This document shows, piece by piece, positions 57 to 15,284 of a stretch of DNA of 18,034 nucleotides; positions within the stretch are counted from its first letter, which is position 1; each line of letters starts with the position of its first letter. The DNA comes from Paramicrosporidium saccamoebae KSL3 (taxonomy: Eukaryota; Fungi; Cryptomycota). The DNA is taken from assembly GCA_002794465.1 (NCBI GenBank), contig MTSL01000106.1, positions 1-18,034 of the forward strand, read 5' to 3'. The notes under the pieces are model-generated. The model searched no databases. It saw nothing but the letters and a program-made list of their open reading frames with translations, and was not told the origin of the DNA. Made by a program: the position numbers and the translations under genes.

Positions 57-2968
57 TTATTCTCTACTATTGGGGTTCGATGGAGGTGGGGGATATCGAC
101 CATACAAATCTTCCACCCGTCGATTCGGCGGGGGACCGCGATGGAAAGCTCCCATTGAAGGCTGCATGGGACGCGGTGGACCCGACAGCACATGGAACGG
201 ATTCCCCTGTGGTGCAGCAAAAGGATATTGCCCCTGTTGGTACGACTGATGGGGTTGATGAGGCTGGTGGGGCTGATAATGCTGAGAGTCATAAGGACGA
301 GAGTCTCCTTGATGATGGGAATCTCTTTGGGGAGGCTGTTGATATGGATTCCTTTGGTAAGAGTCTTGTTGATGCGAATCTCTCTGGTACGCCTCTTGCT
401 GATACGAATCTCTTTGGTACGAGTCTTGTTGATGCGAATCTCTTTGGTAAGAGTCTCGTTGGTACTCTTGCTGATACCCTCTCTGTCCTCCTTGTCGTCC
501 CTGTCCTCTCTGTTGGTATCCTTCCCATTGTCCACCATTTCCTCTCCGTTGACCATCGGATTGGTATTCTCGCTTGCGTCCTGAATCACGTCTTTCATAA
601 TCTCTTCCATGCTCTTGATGCATGGAATGATGTCCAGGTCGTTCCAATTGCAATCTTCCCGGCATCCGTCGTGAGGCCATTCCCGATTGCACCGCACTAA
701 TGTCTTCAGGAGTGAGGATGCGGGATGGCGGTTGTGCCTCTGGGAGCAGCGTGGCTTTGTGTCGCAAATGTTTTCGGTCGTGGTATGGCACAAAGTAGAC
801 AAAACACGCCACTTGAACATCCTCAACATCTACACAGCCCTGTTCAGGCAACGGAGTGGAATAGGTACTCCCCAATCCGGGGAAATCAGCATCCTTCATC
901 ACCCCTCCCGCCAGTCCATCAGTCTCAGCCGGATCCAGTGAAGCAGAATGTTTTCCCTCCTCCAATCTTTTAACCAAATGTCTTGTCACCGGATGCCAGA
1001 TACTGAAAAATACTCGATCCTCTCCTCGAATGTTCATCTGCTGATCCGTAGGGTCCAACTCTGGATAGACCTTTTCAAGTGCACCAAGCAAACGCTCCTC
1101 ATCAATGAAGGGTAGGAGTACGACACCCTGCCAAGCTTGTTTCTTTCCATTCAGATCAATGGCAAAGTCTGTGGGATAAAAGTCAATCACCTCCGAGTCG
1201 TCCTCTGTCATTAGTCGACGGAATGGCTCTGGGACGAGCATCCGACTGTCAGCTGGGAATACACCCATCAACTGGTCAAAGGGTCGGAACGGCTCTCCCA
1301 GTTCAAACGAAATATCCAACTCTCCAATCCCAGTAAGATCGCTGGCAAATGGCGCAAAGTGATAAGGATAAAACCACTTCCAGGAGGGACATCCTTGATA
1401 ATAATATGCCATCACCCAACAGAGACCCTCCACATATGACTTGACCACTTGGGCAATGAACTCTTGATTGTCGGGTTCAATATGGAATTTGCTCCGGTAG
1501 TAGCGACCCTTGCAGCCCCGCTCCCAGAGACGGACATCATCCACAGGCTCATCATCTTGCAGGCTGGCTTCCAGGTGCGTCTTGAACGCCTGGGCAGCCA
1601 CTCTGTTAGCATCGCGCATCTCCAAAAGAGCATTTCCATTCGCAAACTCTCCCGATGGCGGTGTGGGCGTTTGGCTGTGGACCATTTCCCGTTCCGCATC
1701 GGCCATTTTTCTCCGCTTAATGTTTGCATCACGTCGTTCCTCCTTCTCTCGACGTTTCTGGAAGATCATCTCCTCCACCTTTCCTACATCATCAAGGATA
1801 TATTGCGCCCGCGACAATTCAACTGTGCCGTTGTGGCAGATGAAGCCACCCATTCGAGGGAGATTAGCCTTGTAGCTGTCCAAAAGAATGTCAATGGCAC
1901 CCTCACGGATTTCTAGACAGGGAAGATGCGGCAAAAAGTCGTTTCCCACAAAGAAGCACATAAAGATCCAATCGTCAATGGCCCGCTCCAAATCCCATTT
2001 GAAGGGGAGCTGAGTGGACGGCTTCAGTTCCGCCTCCAAATACTCTCTCAAGATGGAAACATCCAAGAAAATAAACGGCTTTTCCTTTATCGGCGCCATA
2101 GTAAAGGTGGGATCATTCTTGGCCCTCTCCACACATGAATCGGCGGCATGCCCTTTAACGCCGCAATGGCCACATGGCGTGTATTTAACCTGCTCCTCCG
2201 AGAAGACATCTTCTCGCAATACTTTAAAGTATGGTTCATGCGTAGCCATCGACAACATGATCAAATCTGCATCTAATCCATAAATCACGTGTTTCGTATG
2301 CGGATCGTAGTCGGGATCAAGTCGCTGGCGTCGGATGTAGTCCATAATCTTGTGCTCTCCCTCTCCAGGTACATTGGCGTCTGAAAAAATCACCTTGACG
2401 TTTCGCCAGGCTGGTTCTCGGTTCATACGTTCCACTATATAGTACTTGATGCTCGATGCAATTAATGCCATAAATTTCGTCCCGGGTGTGATGCAGTTGT
2501 AGTCGAAATAATCTCCACTGTCCTCCGCTTCCGTGCCAAGTTCGCTACGGATTTCAGCATCTTTTTCCGTCTTGTCACGACGTTCTTTGGCGGCCCGGAA
2601 GCGACGGGAACGCTGCTGATTCATTTTGGCTCGTGGGGCAACCCCGTCAATGGCCATGAACAGCAGTTTCCGAGGACGGATCATAGCAAAGATGCGGTCA
2701 ATGTACTTGAATATCTCTACCATCATTTCCTCCTCCGTCTCTGGCGCAGCCTATACATGAAACGGCGTGCCTAGGTTACCTTGTCCGTGGGGTGACAACA
2801 CGGATGGATAATCCCATTCATATCCAAATAGAGATTGTCAAACTCGCAGCCATTCGGATTGGCAGCCAGCAAGTCCAGTGGCGCTCCTTCTGAGGATGCC
2901 TCTACCACATTTCCCACAGTTTTTGGATACTTTGAGGACAACCAGCGAAATAGTGCTGGAACTCCCAT
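57..2968 (-). CDS. XRN2: 5'-3' exoribonuclease 2 (Xrn2/Rat1); complement(join(57..2750,2780..2968)), about 960 aa
   Basis: Canonical start [90 protein letters not shown], and a CX2CX4HX4C knuckle ([14 protein letters not shown]). A 29-nt intron at 2751-2779 (GTAACC..TATAG) joins HPTDK to [10 protein letters not shown] in frame. Confidence 0.97.
346..465. repeat. Coding tandem repeat, 8 x 15 bp with 30-bp periodicity, encoding (Y/H)Q(R/Q)DS pentapeptides in the Xrn2 C-terminal tail
   Basis: Units include gagtcttgttgatgc (361-375 = 421-435) and gaatctctttggta(c/a) (406-420, 436-450), with degenerate units continuing to about 301 and 480. Confidence 0.9.
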
Positions 2969-2989
2969 ACTTTGACCAGGGGAGTCACA

Positions 2990-3892
2990 ATGGGTCCGGA
3001 TGTCTACTGGGACAGTCTAACGGTGGAACGAACACTGAATGTTGATTGGCACACCAAATACATTGCTCTACTTGTTAACATACAATCCGATGCTCATCCG
3101 GACGGGGCAAGGTCCGTGTTGCTGGCTACTCGCCAAGGATTCGACACTGCCCAGCACCTCTTGAATCTCTTCAGGTCGGCCTCTACCCAGCGTGAGCTCA
3201 CGCTACTAGACCATAACGACATTTACTATCGCTTTCTTGTGGGCACTGATGGTGCTGCAGATTGCAAGTTGACTCTCATTCATCCGGCTACTCCTGCTCA
3301 TATCGCAAAATACACCCGTCAGGACCGCATGATTGTCGCTGAAACGCCGGTTATGTACCGATCGATTGTGCTTCCCTGGATTGACGCCCATGGCTCGTCC
3401 CGTCTCAAATGGATAGAGAACATTCTCAATGGAACCAGCGAGCAGGATCGTCTACTGCACCGAAGCGACGATCCCACCAACGGGTTCGTTCTCCTTCCCG
3501 ACTGCAAATGGGACCAGACCTCCCTGACAAGTCTGTATCTTTTGGCCATCCTTTCTCGACGGGATGTGCGTTCGTTGAGAGATTTGACCGCTGAACACCT
3601 CCCAGTCCTCAAAGAAATACGACGAGTTGTTTATCAGGCCGCTCTGGATTCATACAAGCTCGATCCGCGCAAGTTGCGAATGTATGTACATTATCTTCCC
3701 ACCTATTATTATTTCCACGTCCATATCGTCCATGTTGATTTGGAAGCACCCGGCTGTGCTGTCGGTGCTGCCCACTTGCTCGACGACATTATCGATAACA
3801 TTGAACACATTTCCAACGACTATTATCAGCGCAGGACATTGCATTACTATATTGGAACAGAGCATGAACTTTGTCCATTATTAAAGCAATAA
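2990..3892 (+). CDS. DCPS: m7GpppX diphosphatase (scavenger decapping enzyme DcpS/Dcs1), about 300 aa
   Basis: [24 protein letters not shown], and the HIT-type motif [17 protein letters not shown]. The ORF-track start at 2972 is a TTG; the first ATG is at 2990. Confidence 0.93.
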
Positions 3893-4024
3893 ATGTGGTC
3901 ATGTTCATGGTGACCTTTAATAAGCATTCAACTAGAGACTCCAAGAGGTTCTCAAATTGTGATAGAGGGCATTTAGTCAGAGATTACAGGAAATGTATAC
4001 AGGGAGATGATATGGGGAGCGTCA

Positions 4025-4945
4025 TCATTTCGAAATGGACTGGATATGTAGAAATACTGAGGAAAAGTCTTTTTGTCCCATACGTTCTGCTAGGGTGCGA
4101 TACATTTCGGTGGCAATCGCACCGGTGGGGAGTGCGGCGCCGCATCGTTGAGCCTCCTCCAGAGCCAACATCATGTCCTTGACCATCAGCTTTGTTGCGA
4201 ATCCGCCCGCATACTCGGAGGAGGAGGGCACACCAGCCATGATTCCTGGTACTGGATTGTAAGTCTCGCTGGACCATGATCGACCGCTGCTCGAGTTGAT
4301 CACGGCAGAGAGCACCTTTGGATCCAGTCCCAATCGACCTCCAAGATGCAATGCCTCGGACAGAACAACCATTGAAACCCCGAGGATGAGATTGTTGCAA
4401 ATCTTGGCGACCTGACCGCTCCCAGATCCTCCACAATGGAAAATGTTCTTGCCCATGGCCTGGAATAAATCTTTGTTGGTCTCTAACACCTGCGGATCGC
4501 CACCCACAAGAAAACTAAGAGTTCCTGCCGCAGCACCCTTAACACCACCCGAGACGGGTGCATCCAGGAAATTCACTTGGTGTCGGATGGCCGTTTTGGA
4601 AATCTTTTCCTCAACCCCAGGAGAGACAGTGCTGCAATCTATCAGGGTATTATTTTGTTTTGCATGGGCAACCAGGCCGTCACTGCCCAGATAGACATTG
4701 TTCACGATGGAATTATTCGGAAGCATTGTGATTATCCGGGGACAAGTGCTAGCCAACTCCGACAGGGATTTTGCATGTTTTGCAAATTCACGCATCTTGG
4801 CGGAGTCTGTGTCATGAACAACGACGTCGTAGCCCGCCTTGGCGAGATTCCGGGCCATCGGACTGCCCATATGGCCCAGCCCGACGAACCCAACTGTCTT
4901 GCTAGTGGCACTGTAATGCCGCCTCAATGTTGTCCACATACGCAT
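4025..4945 (-). CDS. HIBADH: 3-hydroxyisobutyrate dehydrogenase, mitochondrial, 306 aa
   Basis: Rossmann motif VGFVGLGHMGSPMA, DAPVSGG, catalytic GSGQVAKICNN, SSGRSWSSETYNPVPG, GGFATKLMVKD. The N-terminus is Arg-rich and presequence-like (MRMWTTLRRHYS). Confidence 0.93.
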   Translation of the reverse strand: MRMWTTLRRHYSATSKTVGFVGLGHMGSPMARNLAKAGYDVVVHDTDSAKMREFAKHAKSLSELASTCPRIITMLPNNSIVNNVYLGSDGLVAHAKQNNTLIDCSTVSPGVEEKISKTAIRHQVNFLDAPVSGGVKGAAAGTLSFLVGGDPQVLETNKDLFQAMGKNIFHCGGSGSGQVAKICNNLILGVSMVVLSEALHLGGRLGLDPKVLSAVINSSSGRSWSSETYNPVPGIMAGVPSSSEYAGGFATKLMVKDMMLALEEAQRCGAALPTGAIATEMYRTLAERMGQKDFSSVFLHIQSISK

Positions 4946-5038
4946 GACTGTTTACGTTGTACTACAAATAAATTTATCTTTATCCCGAAAAGGACGTGGG
5001 CAGAATAAATTAGTCGTTTCGCACCATTAGACTCAGAA

Positions 5039-6482
5039 ATGGTACCACAGACCTTTTCGCCCTGCACAATGGCGCCGCGCCAGCCGTACGACAAAATGGC
5101 GTGCGGTATCCTGTCCGCACCGCTCACCTCTAGTGATGGTAGGGCTGCCGGCGCGTGGCAAGACGTACATTGCGCAAAAAGCAAGTCGATATTTGAACTG
5201 GCTGGGCATCTTGACGCGTGTCTTCAATGTAGGGGATTATCGACGCAAGTTTTGCGGAGCTGAGCAGCGCCATGCCTTTTTCGACGCCAAGAATTGCGAG
5301 GCGGAGGAACGAAGGGCAGCGGCAGCCGAGGCGGCATTGGCGGATATGATGGAATGGCTACGGACCACGGAGGGACAGGTGGCCATTTACGACGCTACCA
5401 ACACAACCACGCAGCGACGGGAAATGATCCAAAAAGCATGTGAAAAGGAGGGAGTGTCGGTATGCGCCGGGGATGACTAAGTTGTAGGTCTTGTTCATAG
5501 AGTCCATCTGCCACGACCAAGAGTTGATTCTGGCCAACATCCGGGAGGTAAAGCTCAGCAGTCCCGACTATGCCAATGTTGACTCTGACACGGCCGTGGC
5601 GGACTTTACCGAGCGCATCCAACACTATGCCGAGATCTACCAAACGCTTGACGAAGACGGCCCCGAGGAGCGCTCTTCCTTTGTCAAACTGATCGATGTG
5701 GGTGCCAAGGTGATTATCAATCGCATCCACGACTATCGCCAGAGTCGGATCATTTTCTTCCTAATGAATCTGCACATTAAGCCCCGGTCCATATTCATAT
5801 CAAGAGTAAGCAGAGATTATTATTGACAATGTTGTAGCACGGCGAGACAACCCACAATGTAAAGGGACGGATTGGAGGTGATGCGAGTCTCAGTGACCGA
5901 GGTCTGCAGTTTGCTACGGCACTGCCGGCAGTGGTGCGTCAGATCCACGGCGCTGCGCCCCTGACAGTGTGGACAAGCACTTTGCGTCGTACCATGCAAA
6001 CTGCCAAACATATGGACTGTCCAAAGTTGCAATGGAAGGCGTTGGATGAGCTGGATGCAGGGGTTTGTGATGGTCTCACCTATGAAGAGATTGAGACACA
6101 GTACCCCGAGGACTTTTGTTTGCGCGATTCGGACAAATTCCATTTCCGCTACCGGGGCGGTGAATCATATGCAGATTTGGTGCTGCGCCTGGAGCCGATC
6201 ATCATGGAGGTGGAACGACAGGAGAACATTATGATCATTGGTCATCAAGCAGTGCTACGCGCCATCCTTGCATACTTCCTGAACAAGCCGCATGACGAGC
6301 TGCCTTATCTGAAGATTCCCCTGCACATGCTCATCCAATTGACGCCGCGAGCCTACGGATGTCAAGTGACTTACTATCGCGTGGGTATTGACGCGGTGGA
6401 TACGTATCGCGGACGACCAGGGACAATAGTGCCTTGTTCTCCTGAATCCATCAATATTCCCAGCCCGCTACCTGTCGAATAA
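5039..6482 (+). CDS. PFKFB: Bifunctional 6-phosphofructo-2-kinase/fructose-2,6-bisphosphatase; join(5039..5105,5134..5459,5488..5805,5838..6482), about 451 aa
   Basis: P-loop VMVGLPARGKT, FNVGDYRR, AIYDATNTT, FIESIC, SRHGET and LDELDAG..GLTYEE, YRGGESY. Introns at 5106-5133 (28 nt), 5460-5487 (28 nt) and 5806-5837 (32 nt) restore these motifs. The start could instead be the ATG at 5069. Confidence 0.93.
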
Positions 6483-6622
6483 CCAACAGCCATCCGCAAG
6501 AGAATATATAAAGGATTCAAAATAAGGGATCCCAACTAAAGGATCAGAGAGGAAGTAAAAATAAAGGCTCTCTCAGTGAAATTGTAATGTATTATAGCAT
6601 ATCTATGACTCAGGACGGAGGA

Positions 6623-6637
6623 TCTCTCAGTGAGAGA
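6623..6637. repeat. 7-1-7 palindrome TCTCTCA-G-TGAGAGA; its left 11 bp also occur at 6569-6579
   Basis: Read directly from the sequence; function unknown. Confidence 0.7.
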
Positions 6638-6762
6638 GTATGTTAGCACATGGTACTAAACAGTATCCGCTTACTATTGGTAGTACTGATAGCTATCCGA
6701 TAACCCAACCAGGTCATCGCGGGTGTCGCATAGTGGGGGATAAATAGTATGGACTGTCAGGT

Positions 6763-6997
6763 GGGAAAGGGGGGGTTTGTTCACTGCTAATCTTAGAATA
6801 GTATGGATATACATCTCACTGTCCTTGGATACCCAGCAAAGCGATCCATTCTAGCACACAAATACCCAACTAATCAATCCTCTGGCTCTACGTCACATAG
6901 TCAACTAATCAATCCTCTGGCTCTACGTCATGGTGAGGATGGCGGCCTATAAAGACGCCACAAACTTTTCAATAGAGGTAATATGCTCATCAACACA
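6763..6997 (+). mobile_element. Candidate retrotransposon remnant: polypurine tract plus a single LTR-like segment
   Basis: Purine tract GGGAAAGGGGGGG (6763-6775), then TT and TGTT at 6778. The segment contains a 29-bp duplication, TATAAA (6948-6953) and AATAGA (6971-6976), and ends ..TCAACA(CA) at 6995/6997 followed by TGG. No second LTR, target-site duplication or pol remnant is seen. Confidence 0.35.
6867..6930. repeat. Perfect 29-bp direct repeat (caactaatcaatcctctggctctacgtca) x2 with a 6-bp spacer
   Basis: Copies at 6867-6895 and 6902-6930; spacer catagt. Confidence 0.95.
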
Positions 6998-7080
6998 TGG
7001 CCTGTTCACTGCAAATATCATAAATGTATGACGGATCAAACTCCCCCGTCTTTACTAAAAACCTCACAACTTACATCTAT

Positions 7081-8707
7081 TTACACTAGACCCACGAGAT
7101 GGCCTGGGATTGTGTTGATTTGCCACACCCGGAGGGGCAACATTTCCAGTCGTCGGATTGCCGGAATCAGATAGAAGCGAGTCAGCAACATGCCCGTCAT
7201 TACACAGACCGTGTTGACAATGTAATAGCCGTCCAGGATCACAGTGCACGTGTCTGCAACGCATTTATGCACTGTAAACCAATCAACCGCCGCCATGAGA
7301 AACAGCTTTGGCCACACCCCACCCAGATTGGTAAGGGTGTTGAGGAGCGTCATGTATGTCCCACCGACGGCGGGATCGCTGATCATGGAGAAAAAGGAGC
7401 TCATTGAGACGAACATGACTGTCGAGGCAAAGGACGACACAACCGTTAACAGTGTCACTACCAAAAAGTATCCATTTCCTACACCGACAGTAGGGAATCC
7501 CGCCAGGACGAACATGGCCAGGACGGCAATGGTCAATTTAAAGTATAGTGCATGCTGCCAGGCCCACAGAGGACGGCCATTCTGCGACCATCGCGCTGCC
7601 ACAAATCCCACCACAATTTGACACGGGAAATCAATGAGCACCGTCATGGCCAACTTTTCGCGTGGGAAGCCGCGTTCAATCAGCTTCAATGGCGCAATTG
7701 CATCCAGCGCCAGAAAACCAATGCGCCACAATAGCAGCACCGATCCCAGACGACGCACATTGGGCAGTGATACGATCCGGAGAACTGTGCCATATGCCCC
7801 TGCAATGTTTTTGGGCACAAATTGCTGTATCATCAGCGGCTCTCGTTTCATAAGCGCCACGGCAAGTGTTCCCAAAATTGACGCCCATCCCCAGAACCGC
7901 AGAAACGAGGAAATCTCAAATACGCCCACCCCCAATGGTTCGCTTCGCAGGTAATTATCGCTATAATTAATAAGCACGGGGATGTACCAGAATTCGGCCG
8001 AGTTGAGGGCCAGGAACACGGTAAACGAGACGAAATAGCCGCTGTTGAGACCGACGGTCTGACAGGTGGAGGAAAAGTGTACATGTTCCGGATCCAACAG
8101 GGTCAATGCCCATCCTACAGATCAGTCGTTGCATCAGACGTACCATCTACTGCAATGTCCTGCGTTGCACACAGGAGGATAAACAGTGTAAACACCAAAG
8201 TCATTGTGCCAATGTCGAGATCAGCATTATCCAGCCATCCCTCCACCCGTCCGCTGATTAATAGGAACCCAAGGCCAATCAGTAGTTGAGTGGGGATGAT
8301 CCACGACTTTCTCCTACCAATCTTCCGCCAAAAGTACGAGTCCACTATGGGCGACCATAGCAGTTTTAGACTGTATGGATAGCCGGCCAGCGAGAACAAT
8401 CCAAGGTCCGTAAAGGTCAGACTCTGGCCACCGCGACTCTTCAATAGGTATGGCAAGGTCCCATGTACCAGACCCAATGGAATTCCTTGCAAAAAATCTA
8501 GCCATCACCAACGGCACGGCTGAAGGTACATAGGAAAATTAGAAGCGCGTAGTTGGTCCCTTGTGTCAACGCAGTACGACGTTCTCCGTGGAGTATGCCC
8601 GAGGCAGTGGCTGCCCGTCCACGGCCTTTCAGGAGATCGCCCAGTAACAGCGACTCAGCCGACGACTCTTCGCCCAACGAGTATCGAGAGCGCGACTTGG
8701 GATTCAT
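7081..8707 (-). CDS. SLC33A1: Acetyl-CoA transporter (AT-1/SLC33A1 family, MFS); complement(join(7081..7960,7988..8114,8144..8497,8530..8707)), about 512 aa
   Basis: LLIFLYFLQGIPLGL, YPYSLKLLWSPIVDS, GRRKSWIIPTQ, ATQDIAVDGWALT, STCQTVGLNSGYF, DPAVGGTYMTLLNTLTNLGG. Introns at 8498-8529 (32 nt), 8115-8143 (29 nt) and 7961-7987 (27 nt, gives AEFCDNYL). Confidence 0.92.
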
Positions 8708-8773
8708 AGGGCCCGGTCCATCAACATGTCCTAATTGGGCCACAATTTACACCGTCGCTTGCTATTTCCAGCA

Positions 8774-9189
8774 ATGCCCATTGAAGACCGAATACGTTCT
8801 CCACACATTCCCATTCCCCGAGAGGTGCTAACCCAGCTGGACACCGGTACCAGAGCTGAGCTGTCTGTGCCCATGTGACTGTAGACGTGTCCATCTTTGA
8901 CAAAACTGCGTTTATTTCGCAAATATTGCAGAATTGCTCATGGAATCAGCTAGAGGACATTGACTCTACCATTTCTGACGACATTGTCAGGCTGCGCACC
9001 GCCAAAAAGACTCTCATGTCAGAAAACTATGCCAAATTCATCACCGTCCATGAACATCTCCAAAAGGTAGCACGTCCCCCTCTATGCATTCTTACCCTTT
9101 AGCTGAAGGAAAATTTGACAGCTGCAGTGGCGACGATGGAGCAGATGCAGGAAATTGTTGAGGGCGAACTGCAGGAGTCTGACCAATGA
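8774..9189 (+). CDS. VPS51: Small Vps51/Vps67-domain protein (CATCHR tethering-complex N-terminal domain); join(8774..8846,8885..9066,9103..9189), about 113 aa
   Basis: LDTDVSIFDKTAFISQILQN..L..I..L....KTLMSENYAKFI resembles the Vps51/Exo84/Cog1 N-terminal motif (FD...Y...L...KTLVYENYNKFI). Introns at 8847-8884 (38 nt) and 9067-9102 (36 nt) fit the frame. Which subunit it is remains uncertain. Confidence 0.65.
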
Positions 9190-9238
9190 AAAATCAGCTT
9201 GGAATCCCATAATTTCGAACTATTAAATTCTACGGGGG

Positions 9239-9246
9239 TATATAAA
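9239..9246 (+). promoter_or_regulatory. TATA box of the U6 gene (Pol III)
   Basis: TATATAAA starts 30 bp upstream of the predicted U6 +1 at 9269. Confidence 0.7.
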
Positions 9247-9268
9247 GGACGCCCGCCCCAGTGCTCCT

Positions 9269-9291
9269 GTGGTGTCTCCGGACCCACGCCA

Positions 9292-9325
<34 letters not shown>

Positions 9326-9390
9326 TGCCCCTGCGCAAGGATGACAATCTAAACTTGAGATGGATCAGGTGTTTACACCTGGCAATTTTT
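9269..9390 (+). ncRNA. U6: U6 spliceosomal snRNA (variant)
   Basis: Core ACTAAAATTGGAACGATACAGAGAAGATTAGCATTGCCCCTGCGCAAGGATGACA, with ACAGAGA at 9309-9315 and the AGC triad at 9321-9323. A 5' stem-loop GTGG(T)GTC-TCCG-GACCCAC spans 9269-9287. Upstream TATA and downstream T8. Confidence 0.95.
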
Positions 9391-9393
9391 TTT
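9386..9393 (+). terminator. Pol III oligo(T) terminator of U6
   Basis: A run of 8 T directly follows the U6 3' region. Confidence 0.85.
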
Positions 9394-9413
9394 GCATTCC
9401 AACCGCTAGTTGT

Positions 9414-10145
9414 TTATAAAGTTGTTTGTGCTGCAGGTCTATTGTATGTATCCAGATAGCGTAGAAAGGACGCGGGTATCACCGACGTCGACATGACCGT
9501 CTGCAGTGCCTCTACTGCATTCGCATCCAACTTGACCTTGGCCACTTGTAGACGTCCCAAAAAGGCGGCCAGCTTTGCAAACCGTCGGTCTGTCTTCCTG
9601 GCTACCACCTCTGTCAGTGTCTTCCTCTCCCCGATTCCTGACTGCAGGAGCACCTCAAATATTTCCTGCCAGACGCTGACATGGAGACTTAGCCTGCGTT
9701 GCTGGGCTTGCTGGAGTATTTCAATGAGGCGGGAGAGATGGAGACCTCGAAGATAGACGAACAGGATGGCCGACTCGAGATGCGGTTGGGTGTTGGTGAG
9801 ACAGAGGAACCGGTCCATGAGGGCGGGGGAGGCGGAGTAGCAGATTCGCTCAAAGGTGCGCTGCACTGCATGTGGAGGGACCGTCGCTTTCTTGGCCGAC
9901 ATGAGCTCCAATATCCGCAGTGCACCAGCCGGGTCCGTCTCGTTGGTGGCATAGGCAGCCAATTCCGAGACGTCCTCCTTGGCATCCGCCGCAATTCCAA
10001 GCAGTTCGGTGGCAACTTCCATGTCCTTAGCTTTGCATGCCGCCACCACTGCATCCTGCAGCTGGAGACTGGCAAAGACGGGCATGGTGCGTACCTTTTC
10101 CAACAGGTCCTGTCGGAATGTCGTGGAGTAGAGTCGGCGGAGCAT
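9414..10145 (-). CDS. Hypothetical protein, 243 aa, probably mitochondrial and alpha-helical (PPR-like?)
   Basis: Long ORF filling the gap between U6 and COX17. MLRRLYSTT is a typical presequence, and the body is amphipathic and Leu/Ala-rich. No family recognised. Confidence 0.7.
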   Translation of the reverse strand: MLRRLYSTTFRQDLLEKVRTMPVFASLQLQDAVVAACKAKDMEVATELLGIAADAKEDVSELAAYATNETDPAGALRILELMSAKKATVPPHAVQRTFERICYSASPALMDRFLCLTNTQPHLESAILFVYLRGLHLSRLIEILQQAQQRRLSLHVSVWQEIFEVLLQSGIGERKTLTEVVARKTDRRFAKLAAFLGRLQVAKVKLDANAVEALQTVMSTSVIPASFLRYLDTYNRPAAQTTL

Positions 10146-10176
10146 GGATCCCGGTCACATCCCCAACAAACGTTTA

Positions 10177-10407
10177 TTAGACTATAAAGCCATAGGAGGT
10201 CAGACATGCACGATGCGCTTCTATGTATGTCTGACAATTCTCTTCGCCATTGAATAAGACACAGTCGTCGCGCAGTTTGCGCGTTTCGGGACATGCACAG
10301 CACGGCTTCAATGGGTTTCCTTGTTCGTCGACCGCCGGCTTGGTCGAAATTTCATTTGATACACCGGCAATAGGAGCTTCGGCTTCGACCATCAGATTGC
10401 AAGTCAT
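10177..10407 (-). CDS. COX17: Cytochrome c oxidase copper chaperone Cox17, 76 aa
   Basis: KPCCACPETRKLRDDC..NGEENC..IEAHRACL..YGF: the copper-binding CC plus twin CX9C. Confidence 0.96.
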   Translation of the reverse strand: MTCNLMVEAEAPIAGVSNEISTKPAVDEQGNPLKPCCACPETRKLRDDCVLFNGEENCQTYIEAHRACLTSYGFIV

Positions 10408-10450
10408 GAATGTATTTTTGGGTTACGATAAAATGGGTTTATCATTAAAA

Positions 10451-13400
10451 CTACAATTCGGGACAATTGAACGGCTCTGGCGCCTCCGGCTCATTATCTT
10501 CGGGGGTGGCAGAGATCACTTTGATATCCGATCGCTCAAAGAATTCAGCCGTCTGAGACCCATTACAATCACGGAGGACAATGATTTCGCCCTTCCAGCG
10601 TCCCGAGATTGGTTGATATTTGCCCTCGGCAGGGAAAAGGATGAATGGGAGTTGTTGAGGGGTGACACGAGAAAGATTGCTGATGGAAAAGTTCTCAGGC
10701 TCGGGCTCTGGTGTTGGCTCAGGATCATTGTTATCCGCAGACAGCTCGGGGGATGGTTCGGGTGACTTTGGAGAGTCAATGTCCATCAAACTGCCCTCAG
10801 TAGCCTGAGTAGGCGCCACATCCTAAATGGTCAGACAGCGTTTCTAGTAATGTACAATTTCCATGCCGTTGGATTTTCCAGACTTTTTGGCCCGGGCAGC
10901 CGCCTTGGCTGTTGTGGAGAGGACCGCAGTGACAAACTAAAGATTAGGGATTATGGTGGATCACTGGTACCTTTTTGGGAGCGGCCACAGCGGTTGCTTT
11001 CACTGGGGGAGGGATCGAAAACATGCTCGGCTTGACATTGCAGGTGACCTCAAACTTGGGAATATTAAGCGACTCGTCAACAGCAATCAGCGCAGTAGGG
11101 GAGAGGGCAAAGGAGAGGAAATGCGTCAAGGGATACCAATACCAGAACTGGCAGAAAAGCACTGTTCCTGCCACTGCCATGTGATTCACATGTCCGCTAG
11201 GAGAGGTCAGAGAGAGCACCGAGTTTCGTCCACCGGCATCGATAATGCCCTGAGCAAGGACGGCACCGAATTTGGCCATGGCATCTTCGCTCTTTGTCCC
11301 CACGACCGTCTCAAAGGTAGTACGGGCCCATGTGGAATCTGCGCAAGTAGTGGCGTTCTGCTGCATCATGAGCATGGCCATCGAAATGTACGCTCCCTGA
11401 CGCACAAAATCGGTAAAATCTTTGCACATTGGTTTCACCAATTCAATGGCAGCAGTGTTTCCCGTTCCAGCAAACGCAATACCCAACGCCATTGCCGCTC
11501 CGTATCTCACATGAGGATTGTAGCTTTCCGTCAAGAGTTCAATGATTTTGGACAGTTCTTGGGGGTTTTGGCAAAGAACGATTCCAAGGGAAGTGACAGC
11601 CGCACGACGCACATCATCGCTTCCGTCACTAACTGCCGCATGCAACAACCTTCCCAGTGCCTTCTTTTCGCTAGTACCCGCATATGCAGTGGCCAGAGTC
11701 CATATTCCTCCATATCGGATCAATGGATCCTTGGCTAGCAACATTTGTTCAATAAAAGTGTCTGATTGCTCTCTCAATCCCGCAAATATCAGAGAAATTG
11801 CAATGGAGATTCCACGAATTGACTTTTCGTGGCGAGTTTCGTGGGCGTAGGAGAGAATCTCGTGAGCAATCTCGGCATTTCCACTTTCATGGAGAATCAG
11901 GCCAATGGCAATGGCTGCAGCTTCACCAGAAACAGCATTGTCATTATACAGGATTCCCTTGACCACATCAACAAGTTCCATGTCGCCCGAAGACATGGTC
12001 GAAGCGCCTAATCCGAGACACAGTCCATGATGAAGAACTTCATTCTCCGTCTTTCCAATCTGTTCCATAAAGTACTCCTTCTCGACAGTTCCACAGCGAG
12101 CATTGATAAGTCCCAGCGCGTACATGGCGCCTCCTTCAGAATATGGACTTCCAGATCCATCATTCGAGGGCAGGTAGGGTTTTAGGATTTCCCGTCCCTT
12201 GCTAGCCTGTCCCTTGTGAATGACACCAAGACTGGATGCGGCCGTAAACTTGGCCCAGTTTGATGCAAATCCGAGCCATTCCAAATTCTTCCGAAGGAAT
12301 TCATCGTTGGTGCTGCCACAGTGAAGGATGGCATTTGAACAGGAGAGGACAGAATGGTGCATAGAGTTGTGGGCATTCAGCATTTCCTTGGTACGCTCCA
12401 TCACCATCATATCCGCATTGTTATTCCGATACAAAAATTCTAGCTGAAGCTGGGTAGAACGTGTCCCGTCCAATATGGAGACGACTTCAGTGACAAGACC
12501 AGAAGCTTCGGAGCTCGGGGCTTGCTTGCCTTGTCCCATTATGGAGATGAGGATAGTTTGTAGGAATTCTCGAGTAGCATCAGCACATAGATTGAAGCAT
12601 ATTTGCAGAACAACTGGACGCACAGCAGCATCTTTACACGAATCTCCAATCAAGCGAGCAATCAAACGTGAACATCCATCCGCATCGTGCATGGCAACCA
12701 GACAATCAGCGACAAAAATAAAGTCTGGCTTAGCAAAGCCTGCAGCCATATTGGCCACGACTGCAAGGACTCTTTGCTGATACTCCAGACTAGAAGCATG
12801 TTTCATTACGGCCTTCTGGGCATACTCGAGATGCTCTTGGGGAGACGGACTGCTCTTTAAAGCAGTCTCAAGAGTATCGAGACGATGGGCCTCGATGGCA
12901 ATGCCAATGGCCTGCTTGTACTCTTGTGCGGATAGACATCCCTCAATCAGACGCTCCACCAGTGCCTCCAGTGCAGGCTCCACAATCCTCACATCGTCCG
13001 AATGTTCCTCATTGTGCACTCGCACCTCCACATATTGATCAATAGCTTTGGCAAGAATCGTCTCCACAAAGGGCGAAAGCTCACAGACTTTGAACATGGT
13101 GTCGGCTTTTAGGGCATAGTCCACCGACTTTTCATAGTCGCCCAGGTGAAAGTGCAACTTGGAGAGGAGTAGCCACGCGGGGGCGGGCTGTGGAAGTTGG
13201 CCTGCGAGAGCCAAAATTCGCGTCAAGGAATCGGATATTTCGTACCAGAAAAAGTCCACGAGCTCCAGAAGCATATTGACCGCTTGAGAGCACACCTCAA
13301 GCTGAGGCTCCTCCAGCAATGCCATTACCCCAACTACAGACGAGATTAGAATTCCCACGGTTGCTATACCGGCCGAGGTGGCTTTGCGGCACTCGGAGCC

Positions 13401-13466
13401 TGCAAACGCGCCCTTCATATCGCTTCCTTTGGCGGCCATTGATGACTTGATAGTCGTCGCAGTCAT
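10451..13466 (-). CDS. RPN2: 26S proteasome regulatory subunit Rpn2/PSMD1; complement(join(10451..10822,10856..10936,10971..13333,13370..13466)), about 970 aa
   Basis: TSAVGVMALLEE, FWYEISDS, NWAKFTAASSLGVIHKG, SPYSEGGAMYALGLI, DDVRRAAV, YNPHVRYGAA, QGIIDAGGRN, TAVLSTTAKA..RAKK, C-terminal EPEAPEPF. Introns at 13334-13369 (36 nt), 10937-10970 (34 nt) and 10823-10855 (33 nt). The start could be the ATG at 13466, 13439 or 13418. Confidence 0.95.
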
Positions 13467-15212: not shown

Positions 15213-15284
15213 TTCCGCATCGGGGAATCGAACCCCGGCCGCCGCGGTGAAAGCGCGGAATCCTAGCCACTAGACCAATGCGGA
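15213..15284 (-). tRNA. tRNA-Glu, anticodon TTC
   Basis: TCCGCATTGGTCTAGTGGCTAGGATTCCGCGCTTTCACCGCGGCGGCCGGGGTTCGATTCCCCGATGCGGAA: 7-bp acceptor stem, CCGCG/CGCGG anticodon stem, GTTCGATTCC T-loop, and a T5 terminator at 15206-15210. Confidence 0.96.

Follow-up and report, generated by a model that had tools for sequence, protein, structure and literature searches.

The U6 snRNA gene of Paramicrosporidium saccamoebae contains an extra hairpin in its 3' domain, directly before the telestem strand that leads into the oligo(U) tail. The hairpin is probably an integral, selected expansion segment of U6 in P. saccamoebae and its uncultured relatives. The place of the T-run puts it firmly in the predicted primary transcript, and gene comparison reveals purifying selection on its pairing; the mature RNA would retain it as well. 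The gene was examined in a single 18-kb window of a 7.3-Mb genome; the window is the whole stretch of 18,034 nucleotides that was analysed, and its features are listed in Table 1.

P. saccamoebae is an intranuclear parasite of amoebae. It belongs to the Rozellomycota and is a sister lineage or close outgroup of Microsporidia; its genome is 7.3 Mb long with 47% GC, and the genome paper is silent on introns, snRNA and splicing (PMC5701793). A review describes U6 as the most conserved snRNA in both sequence and length, and names only U6atac as having an additional 3' stem-loop (PMC5855946). An insertion into the 3' domain that is supported by covariation is therefore unusual.

Table 1. Coordinates of the U6 gene, its parts and other features of the window
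Feature	Position	Strand	Basis
U6 snRNA gene, start to end of T8 terminator	9269-9393	+	RF00026 and eight-member alignment A3
TATA box TATATAAA, first T at -30 from U6 start	9239-9246	+	sequence
CCC/CCCC runs after TATA box	9252-9259	+	sequence
5' stem-loop GUGG-U-GUC UCCG GAC CCAC	9269-9287	+	predicted fold; compensatory double changes in 3 of 7 pairs
Telestem 5' strand AAAAUUG	9295-9301	+	pairs with 9383-9389
ACAGAGA box	9309-9315	+	invariant in A3
AGC triad	9321-9323	+	sequence
Internal stem-loop (ISL)	9324-9348	+	predicted (consensus fold); invariant in the family, hence without covariation evidence either way
CUUGAGAUGGAU, equivalent of U6 strand of U2/U6 helix II	9354-9365	+	alignment with CGAGAAUGUAU of control U6 genes
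Extra 3' hairpin, 7 pairs (U.G and 6 Watson-Crick), loop UUUA at 9372-9375	9365-9382	+	folding, covariation
Telestem 3' strand CAAUUUU	9383-9389	+	directly abuts hairpin base
T8 run, Pol III terminator and source of U-tail	9386-9393	+	sequence
tRNA-Glu(UUC)	15213-15284	-	plain T5 two bases after acceptor stem
29-nt intron, Rat1/Xrn2	2751-2779	-	frame restored; XRN_N catalytic segment matched
29-nt intron, acetyl-CoA transporter (Acatn)	8115-8143	-	frame restored; AVDGWALT matched
35-nt intron, Vps51-like gene	9068-9102	+	frame restored; junction from sequence only

The extra hairpin is a variant feature of an RNA that stays within the U6 family. Positions 9269-9374 (+) match Rfam RF00026 at full length (85.5 bits, E = 6.5e-21, model positions 1-105; the gathering threshold is 44 bits), and the U6 genes of relatives score 84-90 bits against the same model. 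The window U6 shares with canonical U6 (human, yeast, plant) the 5' stem-loop, ACAGAGA, AGC, ISL, telestem complementarity, the U-tail and a Pol III-type TATA box and T-run. It differs in length (about 121-125 nt as against about 100-112 nt), with 16 extra nucleotides present as the hairpin, and in the lower stem of the ISL, which reads GCAUUGCC/GACAAU. In full, the lower ISL of the window is GCAUUGCC...GACAAUC, while the U6 consensus has GCAUGGCC...GACACGC; this lineage-specific form allows A-U, U-A, U-A and G-C pairs plus a bulged A, and is invariant in the family.

U6atac, too, is a U6-class RNA in which an additional stem-loop separates the ISL from the 3' tail (PMC5855946), and identity with it was considered and rejected: the best match within clan CL00009 is U6, and both a 5' stem-loop and ACAGAGA are present. 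U6atac, in contrast, lacks a 5' stem-loop; its box is of the AAGGAGAGA type, and its long 3' stem-loop far exceeds the window hairpin in length and is unrelated to it in sequence. In U6atac, this 3' stem-loop determines protein binding, with the RRMs of 65K and RBM41 as its partners (PMC11039992). Microsporidia seem to lack the minor spliceosome altogether (Davila Lopez et al. 2008, PMC2396436).

The sequence of 9340-9399 is GATGACAATCTAAACTTGAGATGGATCAGGTGTTTACACCTGGCAATTTTTTTTGCATTC. The initial annotation had described a U6 with an independent hairpin before the oligo(U) tail; the Rfam match, the fold and the covariation all bear this out. The pairing that it gave, C9366-G9371 with C9376-G9381 plus U9365 with G9382, is exact. 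The insert proper is 16 nt long, CAGGUG-UUUA-CACCUG (6 + 4 + 6 nt). It has the helix II-equivalent segment on its 5' side and the telestem 3' strand on its 3' side; the first hairpin nucleotide is also the last nucleotide of CUUGAGAUGGAU. One minor coordinate did not hold: the region after GAUGACA starts at 9347 rather than 9349, a trivial offset that leaves the hairpin positions as given.

The hairpin forms in both the MFE and the centroid structure of the whole U6 RNA (ViennaRNA). It does so in an isolated 31-nt segment as well, with -8.9 kcal/mol and z = -2.95; none of 200 shuffled sequences is as stable. RNAalifold, given no structure, returns the same four helices, with the base of the hairpin directly abutting the telestem.

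RF00026 aligns the terminal UUUUU of its model to GUGUUU in the hairpin loop, while the true T-run lies 12 nt further on. Since the U-tail of the model is forced into the loop, an insertion relative to the consensus is confirmed; the initial annotation had proposed this check against RF00026. In practice, automatic annotation would end U6 inside the hairpin, about 15-19 nt short, and 3' ends would be misplaced in these genomes.

The same alignment raises the question of whether the hairpin is a 3' trailer, which is transcribed and then removed to leave a U6 of canonical length. The consensus does end in the loop, and at about 106 nt the RNA would pass for canonical. However, CAAUUUU, the 3' strand of the telestem, follows the hairpin and is itself conserved, with a compensating U.G, so removal would cost the RNA both its telestem and its Lsm-binding U-tail; moreover, the hairpin loop has just three U, and the extra stem is kept in RACE-mapped microsporidian U6. 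A trailer is thus very unlikely. Retention of the integral hairpin in the mature RNA would follow from the position of the telestem strand and U-tail downstream of it, and from the extra stem that RACE-mapped E. cuniculi U6 keeps.

The gene has the architecture of a Pol III gene as judged by sequence, with TATATAAA at -30 and a T8 run. The region 9239-9268 and its equivalents in seven relative loci all have a TATA-like box followed by CCC/GGG runs. The T8 run is the first run of at least four T in the gene, and the T-run is T6-T8 long in all members of the Paramicrosporidium-type U6 family. Because there is no such run before 9386, the hairpin has to be part of any Pol III transcript; the polymerase would read through it to the first usable T-run, 4 nt downstream. 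The predicted primary transcript is about 121-125 nt long; the initial annotation had put U6 at about 120 nt.

The hairpin could instead serve as an aid to termination, in which it would promote Pol III pausing and release or define the 3' end and have no role in the spliceosome. A consensus scan does report 9365-9382 and the T-rich tail as a site resembling an intrinsic terminator, and the hairpin is always followed by T6-T8. The likeness to a bacterial-type intrinsic terminator extends to the GC-containing hairpin and the T-run that comes after it. The window U6 differs in being a eukaryotic Pol III gene, and the fixed 4-nt spacer (GCAA or GCGA) between stem and T-run is itself part of the conserved telestem. 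The tRNA-Glu gene of the same window ends with a plain T5, and 14 other distinct U6 genes terminate without such a hairpin. In addition, the UUUA loop and the closing pairs never vary, which suggests a tighter constraint than stability of the stem would demand. A role limited to termination is unlikely.

A mRNA-type intron in U6, as found in many fungi, was considered as another source of the extra length and rejected. The 16-nt insert is not bounded by GU...AG; the GT at 9369 varies among the genes (CAGGAG and CAGTGG also occur), and Pol III would stop at T8.

The excess length is specific to this lineage among the U6 genes compared. The distance from GATGACA to the T-run is 39 nt in all U6 genes of the Paramicrosporidium type and 23-25 nt in 14 unrelated environmental U6 genes, each of which lacks the hairpin. 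Of these 14 distinct control genes, 13 lie on contigs of unrelated eukaryotes that contaminate bacterial MAGs, and the remaining one lies on a metagenome contig. The excess of 14-16 nt is close to the 16 nt of the insert, so the size difference amounts to about one hairpin. RF00026 has a conserved length and a stretch from helix II to the U-tail that is free of any independent hairpin; the window U6 departs from this.

Seven further distinct U6 genes bear the hairpin at the same position (L001, L003, L005, L006, L008, L012 and L016); the U6 sequence of L037 is the same as that of L008. Relative loci were fetched via homologues of the orphan neighbour protein, RPN2 and Rat1, and more came from a pattern scan of metagenome contigs, in which the lower-ISL form served as lineage marker. 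The RPN2 proteins of the relatives are 76, 65 and 57-58% identical to that of the window. In the RPN2 tree, the window groups with proteins from metagenome and SRA assemblies, one of them from activated sludge, in a clade that has good support and a long stem.

Five of the seven further U6 genes are syntenic with the window. The order Rat1-DcpS-HIBADH-(6PF2K)-Acatn-U6-orphan-COX17-RPN2 is largely conserved (L003-L009 and L037, compared with window positions 57-13466), with one rearrangement in L006, L008 and L037; 6PF2K is present in relatives and missing from the window. The syntenic Paramicrosporidium-like loci come from activated sludge, other metagenomes and SRA runs, and represent an uncultured, diverse clade.

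Gene order also bears on the possibility that the hairpin belongs not to U6 but to the convergent minus-strand gene for a 243-aa protein, which ends at 9414, as part of its 3' UTR or polyadenylation region. The stop codon of this ORF is only 20 nt from T8, and a palindrome folds on either strand. In the rearranged loci L006, L008 and L037, however, U6 sits between Acatn and SNO; its neighbours are different from those in the window, yet the hairpin is still found at the same place in U6. These loci contradict an assignment to the neighbouring gene, which is almost certainly wrong.

Other searches delimit the family. A metagenome scan with AGCATTGCCCCTGCGCAAGGATGACA gave only two more members, and a scan of viral contigs gave none; a GTDB scan with the U6 core returned only canonical U6 genes, all on eukaryotic contaminant contigs, and these served as controls. 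No U6 was found in the more distant RPN2 or Rat1 homologue loci (L007, L009, L033-L036, L038 and L039). Three U6-like copies in other metagenome contigs (L013 635-660, L015 7690-7715 and L014 826-851) have a damaged ACAGAGA (GTAGAGC) or no T-run, with repeated sequence on their flanks; they probably represent pseudogenes of unrelated eukaryotes, or copies embedded in repeats there.

Between position 27 and the U-tail, the eight aligned genes differ only in four columns of the hairpin, in a single A-to-G substitution on the telestem 3' strand and in how long the T-run is. The hairpin stem is CAGGUG/CACCUG in the window and L001, CAGUGG/CCACUG in L003 and CAGGAG/CUCCUG in the rest. Pair 4 is accordingly G-C or U-A, and pair 5 is U-A, A-U or G-C. 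All hairpin cells are paired (100%) in the eight genes. Double compensatory changes occur in two of the seven pairs, a count that derives from only three stem variants, in eight genes of one clade, and hence from few independent events. The covariation score of the whole structure is 0.139, compared with 0.040 in shuffled alignments, and none of 500 shuffles reaches 0.139. Slid registers, used as controls, show essentially no covariation: no slide has more than one double change.

The hairpin is more than a chance palindrome because it is kept in eight distinct U6 genes with compensatory changes. Covariation, together with the extra length relative to the controls, identifies it as a selected structural part of the U6 transcript. 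The comparison of related genomes suggested in the initial annotation thus supports its proposal of a remodelled 3' domain, and adds that this domain is under selection.

Selection on pairing is compatible with a neutral expansion segment, that is, a palindromic insertion at a tolerant peripheral site that pairs with itself to avoid interference and has no positive function. The site lies at the periphery of U6 beside the flexible 3' tail (PMC5855946), other snRNA oddities are known from reduced genomes of the clade (PMC5499648), and compensation shows only that pairing is maintained. On the other hand, the loop, five of the seven hairpin pairs and the exact length are invariant across lineages whose proteins are only 57% identical. 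Compact genomes tend to lose dispensable sequence. With 7.3 Mb and about 76% gene space, the P. saccamoebae genome is compact (PMC5701793). A segment free of positive function is unlikely, and selection for the hairpin as an integral part of U6 explains the data better.

How the integral hairpin may act is suggested by its position. CAAUUUU is complementary to AAAAUUG, as had been noted at the outset, and the seven telestem pairs are 100% kept across the eight genes, including one change from U-A to U.G. In free U6, the hairpin would close directly onto G33-C115 of this weak, AU-rich 7-bp telestem (AAAAUUG/CAAUUUU). From the predicted secondary structure, the hairpin probably stacks on the telestem, and the two would form a coaxial stack at a three-way junction. 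Such a stack may stiffen and stabilise the telestem and the 3' domain of the free U6 snRNP. In yeast, stabilisation of the telestem raises Prp24 affinity and U4/U6 annealing (PMC5855946). The hairpin would leave a short single-stranded GCAAU(n) tail to be offered to La and Lsm2-8, and may shield the body of the RNA against 3'-5' trimming. The invariant UUUA loop is likely to be a protein contact.

The hairpin would also set the helix II strand apart from the telestem strand. In yeast, telestem and helix II are mutually exclusive (PMC5855946); if the two strands are separated, as modelled here, such competition need not arise. The assignment of CUUGAGAUGGAU as the putative helix II strand draws on control U2/U6 pairs: the U2 5' end AUACCUUCUCG on control contigs L020, L026 and L027 is largely complementary to U6 CGAGAAUGUAU, which lies just before the U-tail. 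Neither the window nor about 330 kb of fetched relative loci yielded a U2 gene of the Paramicrosporidium lineage. Complementarity to CUUGAGAUGGAU predicts that the Paramicrosporidium U2 5' end is AUCCAUCUCA...

Three genes of the window contain very short introns of 29-35 nt (Table 1). The initial annotation had raised a link between the hairpin and the splicing of tiny introns; the two features show only co-occurrence. Altered recycling factors (Prp24, Usb1 or Lsm8), which it had raised as well, would be a further possible link. The window encodes an 889-aa Rat1/Xrn2 ORF with 100% identity to PSACC_01475 of P. saccamoebae. The PSACC_01475 model (window 2751-2968, minus strand) joins ...KTVGNV to AAPETEEE and skips 42 residues, including a conserved XRN_N catalytic motif; these residues are kept in relatives P0128 and P0130. 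The real Rat1 intron is 29 nt long, and the annotated intron is too long.

Microsporidia provide the closest parallel. RACE-validated U6 RNAs of Encephalitozoon and Nosema are longer than those of human and yeast and have unexpected "additional stems" near the 3' end (Belkorchia et al. 2017, PMC5499648). In E. cuniculi, U6 ends were mapped by both 5' and 3' RACE and the additional 3' stem is retained, and promoters of ncRNA genes have a TATA box and a CCC/GGG motif near the start site (PMC5499648). By description, the window U6 resembles microsporidian U6 in its greater length and in having a further stem close to its 3' end; the lineages are related, and both have a TATA-like and CCC/GGG promoter and very short introns. 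The two differ in that Paramicrosporidium U6 is otherwise near-consensus, and in that the organism has mitochondria and oxidative phosphorylation and is less reduced.

The initial annotation had implied that the hairpin is unique, and had held that its presence in many fungal U6 RNAs would speak against it. Uniqueness is weakened by the microsporidian 3' stems (PMC5499648), which probably are, in part, just such an occurrence in relatives. As judged by this comparison, the hairpin and the microsporidian extra stems are likely homologous. Since Paramicrosporidium is a close outgroup of Microsporidia, a trait shared by the clade is the most economical reading; it is newly documented here for Paramicrosporidium, with covariation support. 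The hairpin is an interesting lineage trait, not a new kind of RNA.

The insertion occupies the very site at which the telestem, helix II, Lsm2-8, Prp24 and Prp43 act, and is a natural experiment on the limits within which this part of U6 can be rebuilt. A tentative and rather doubtful extension is that the hairpin is the ancestral form of the microsporidian extra U6 3' stem. It would then reflect a remodelling across the clade (Paramicrosporidium-like Rozellomycota and Microsporidia) that separates telestem and helix II strands, lets U6 hold its 3' domain pre-folded throughout the splicing cycle and be recycled by fewer chaperones (Prp24/SART3, Lsm8, Usb1), and arose before extreme genome reduction, together with very short introns. 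Should the hairpin and the microsporidian stem be homologous, the change predates mitochondrial loss and spliceosome collapse; such an early date, if true, would argue against a mere by-product of extreme reduction.
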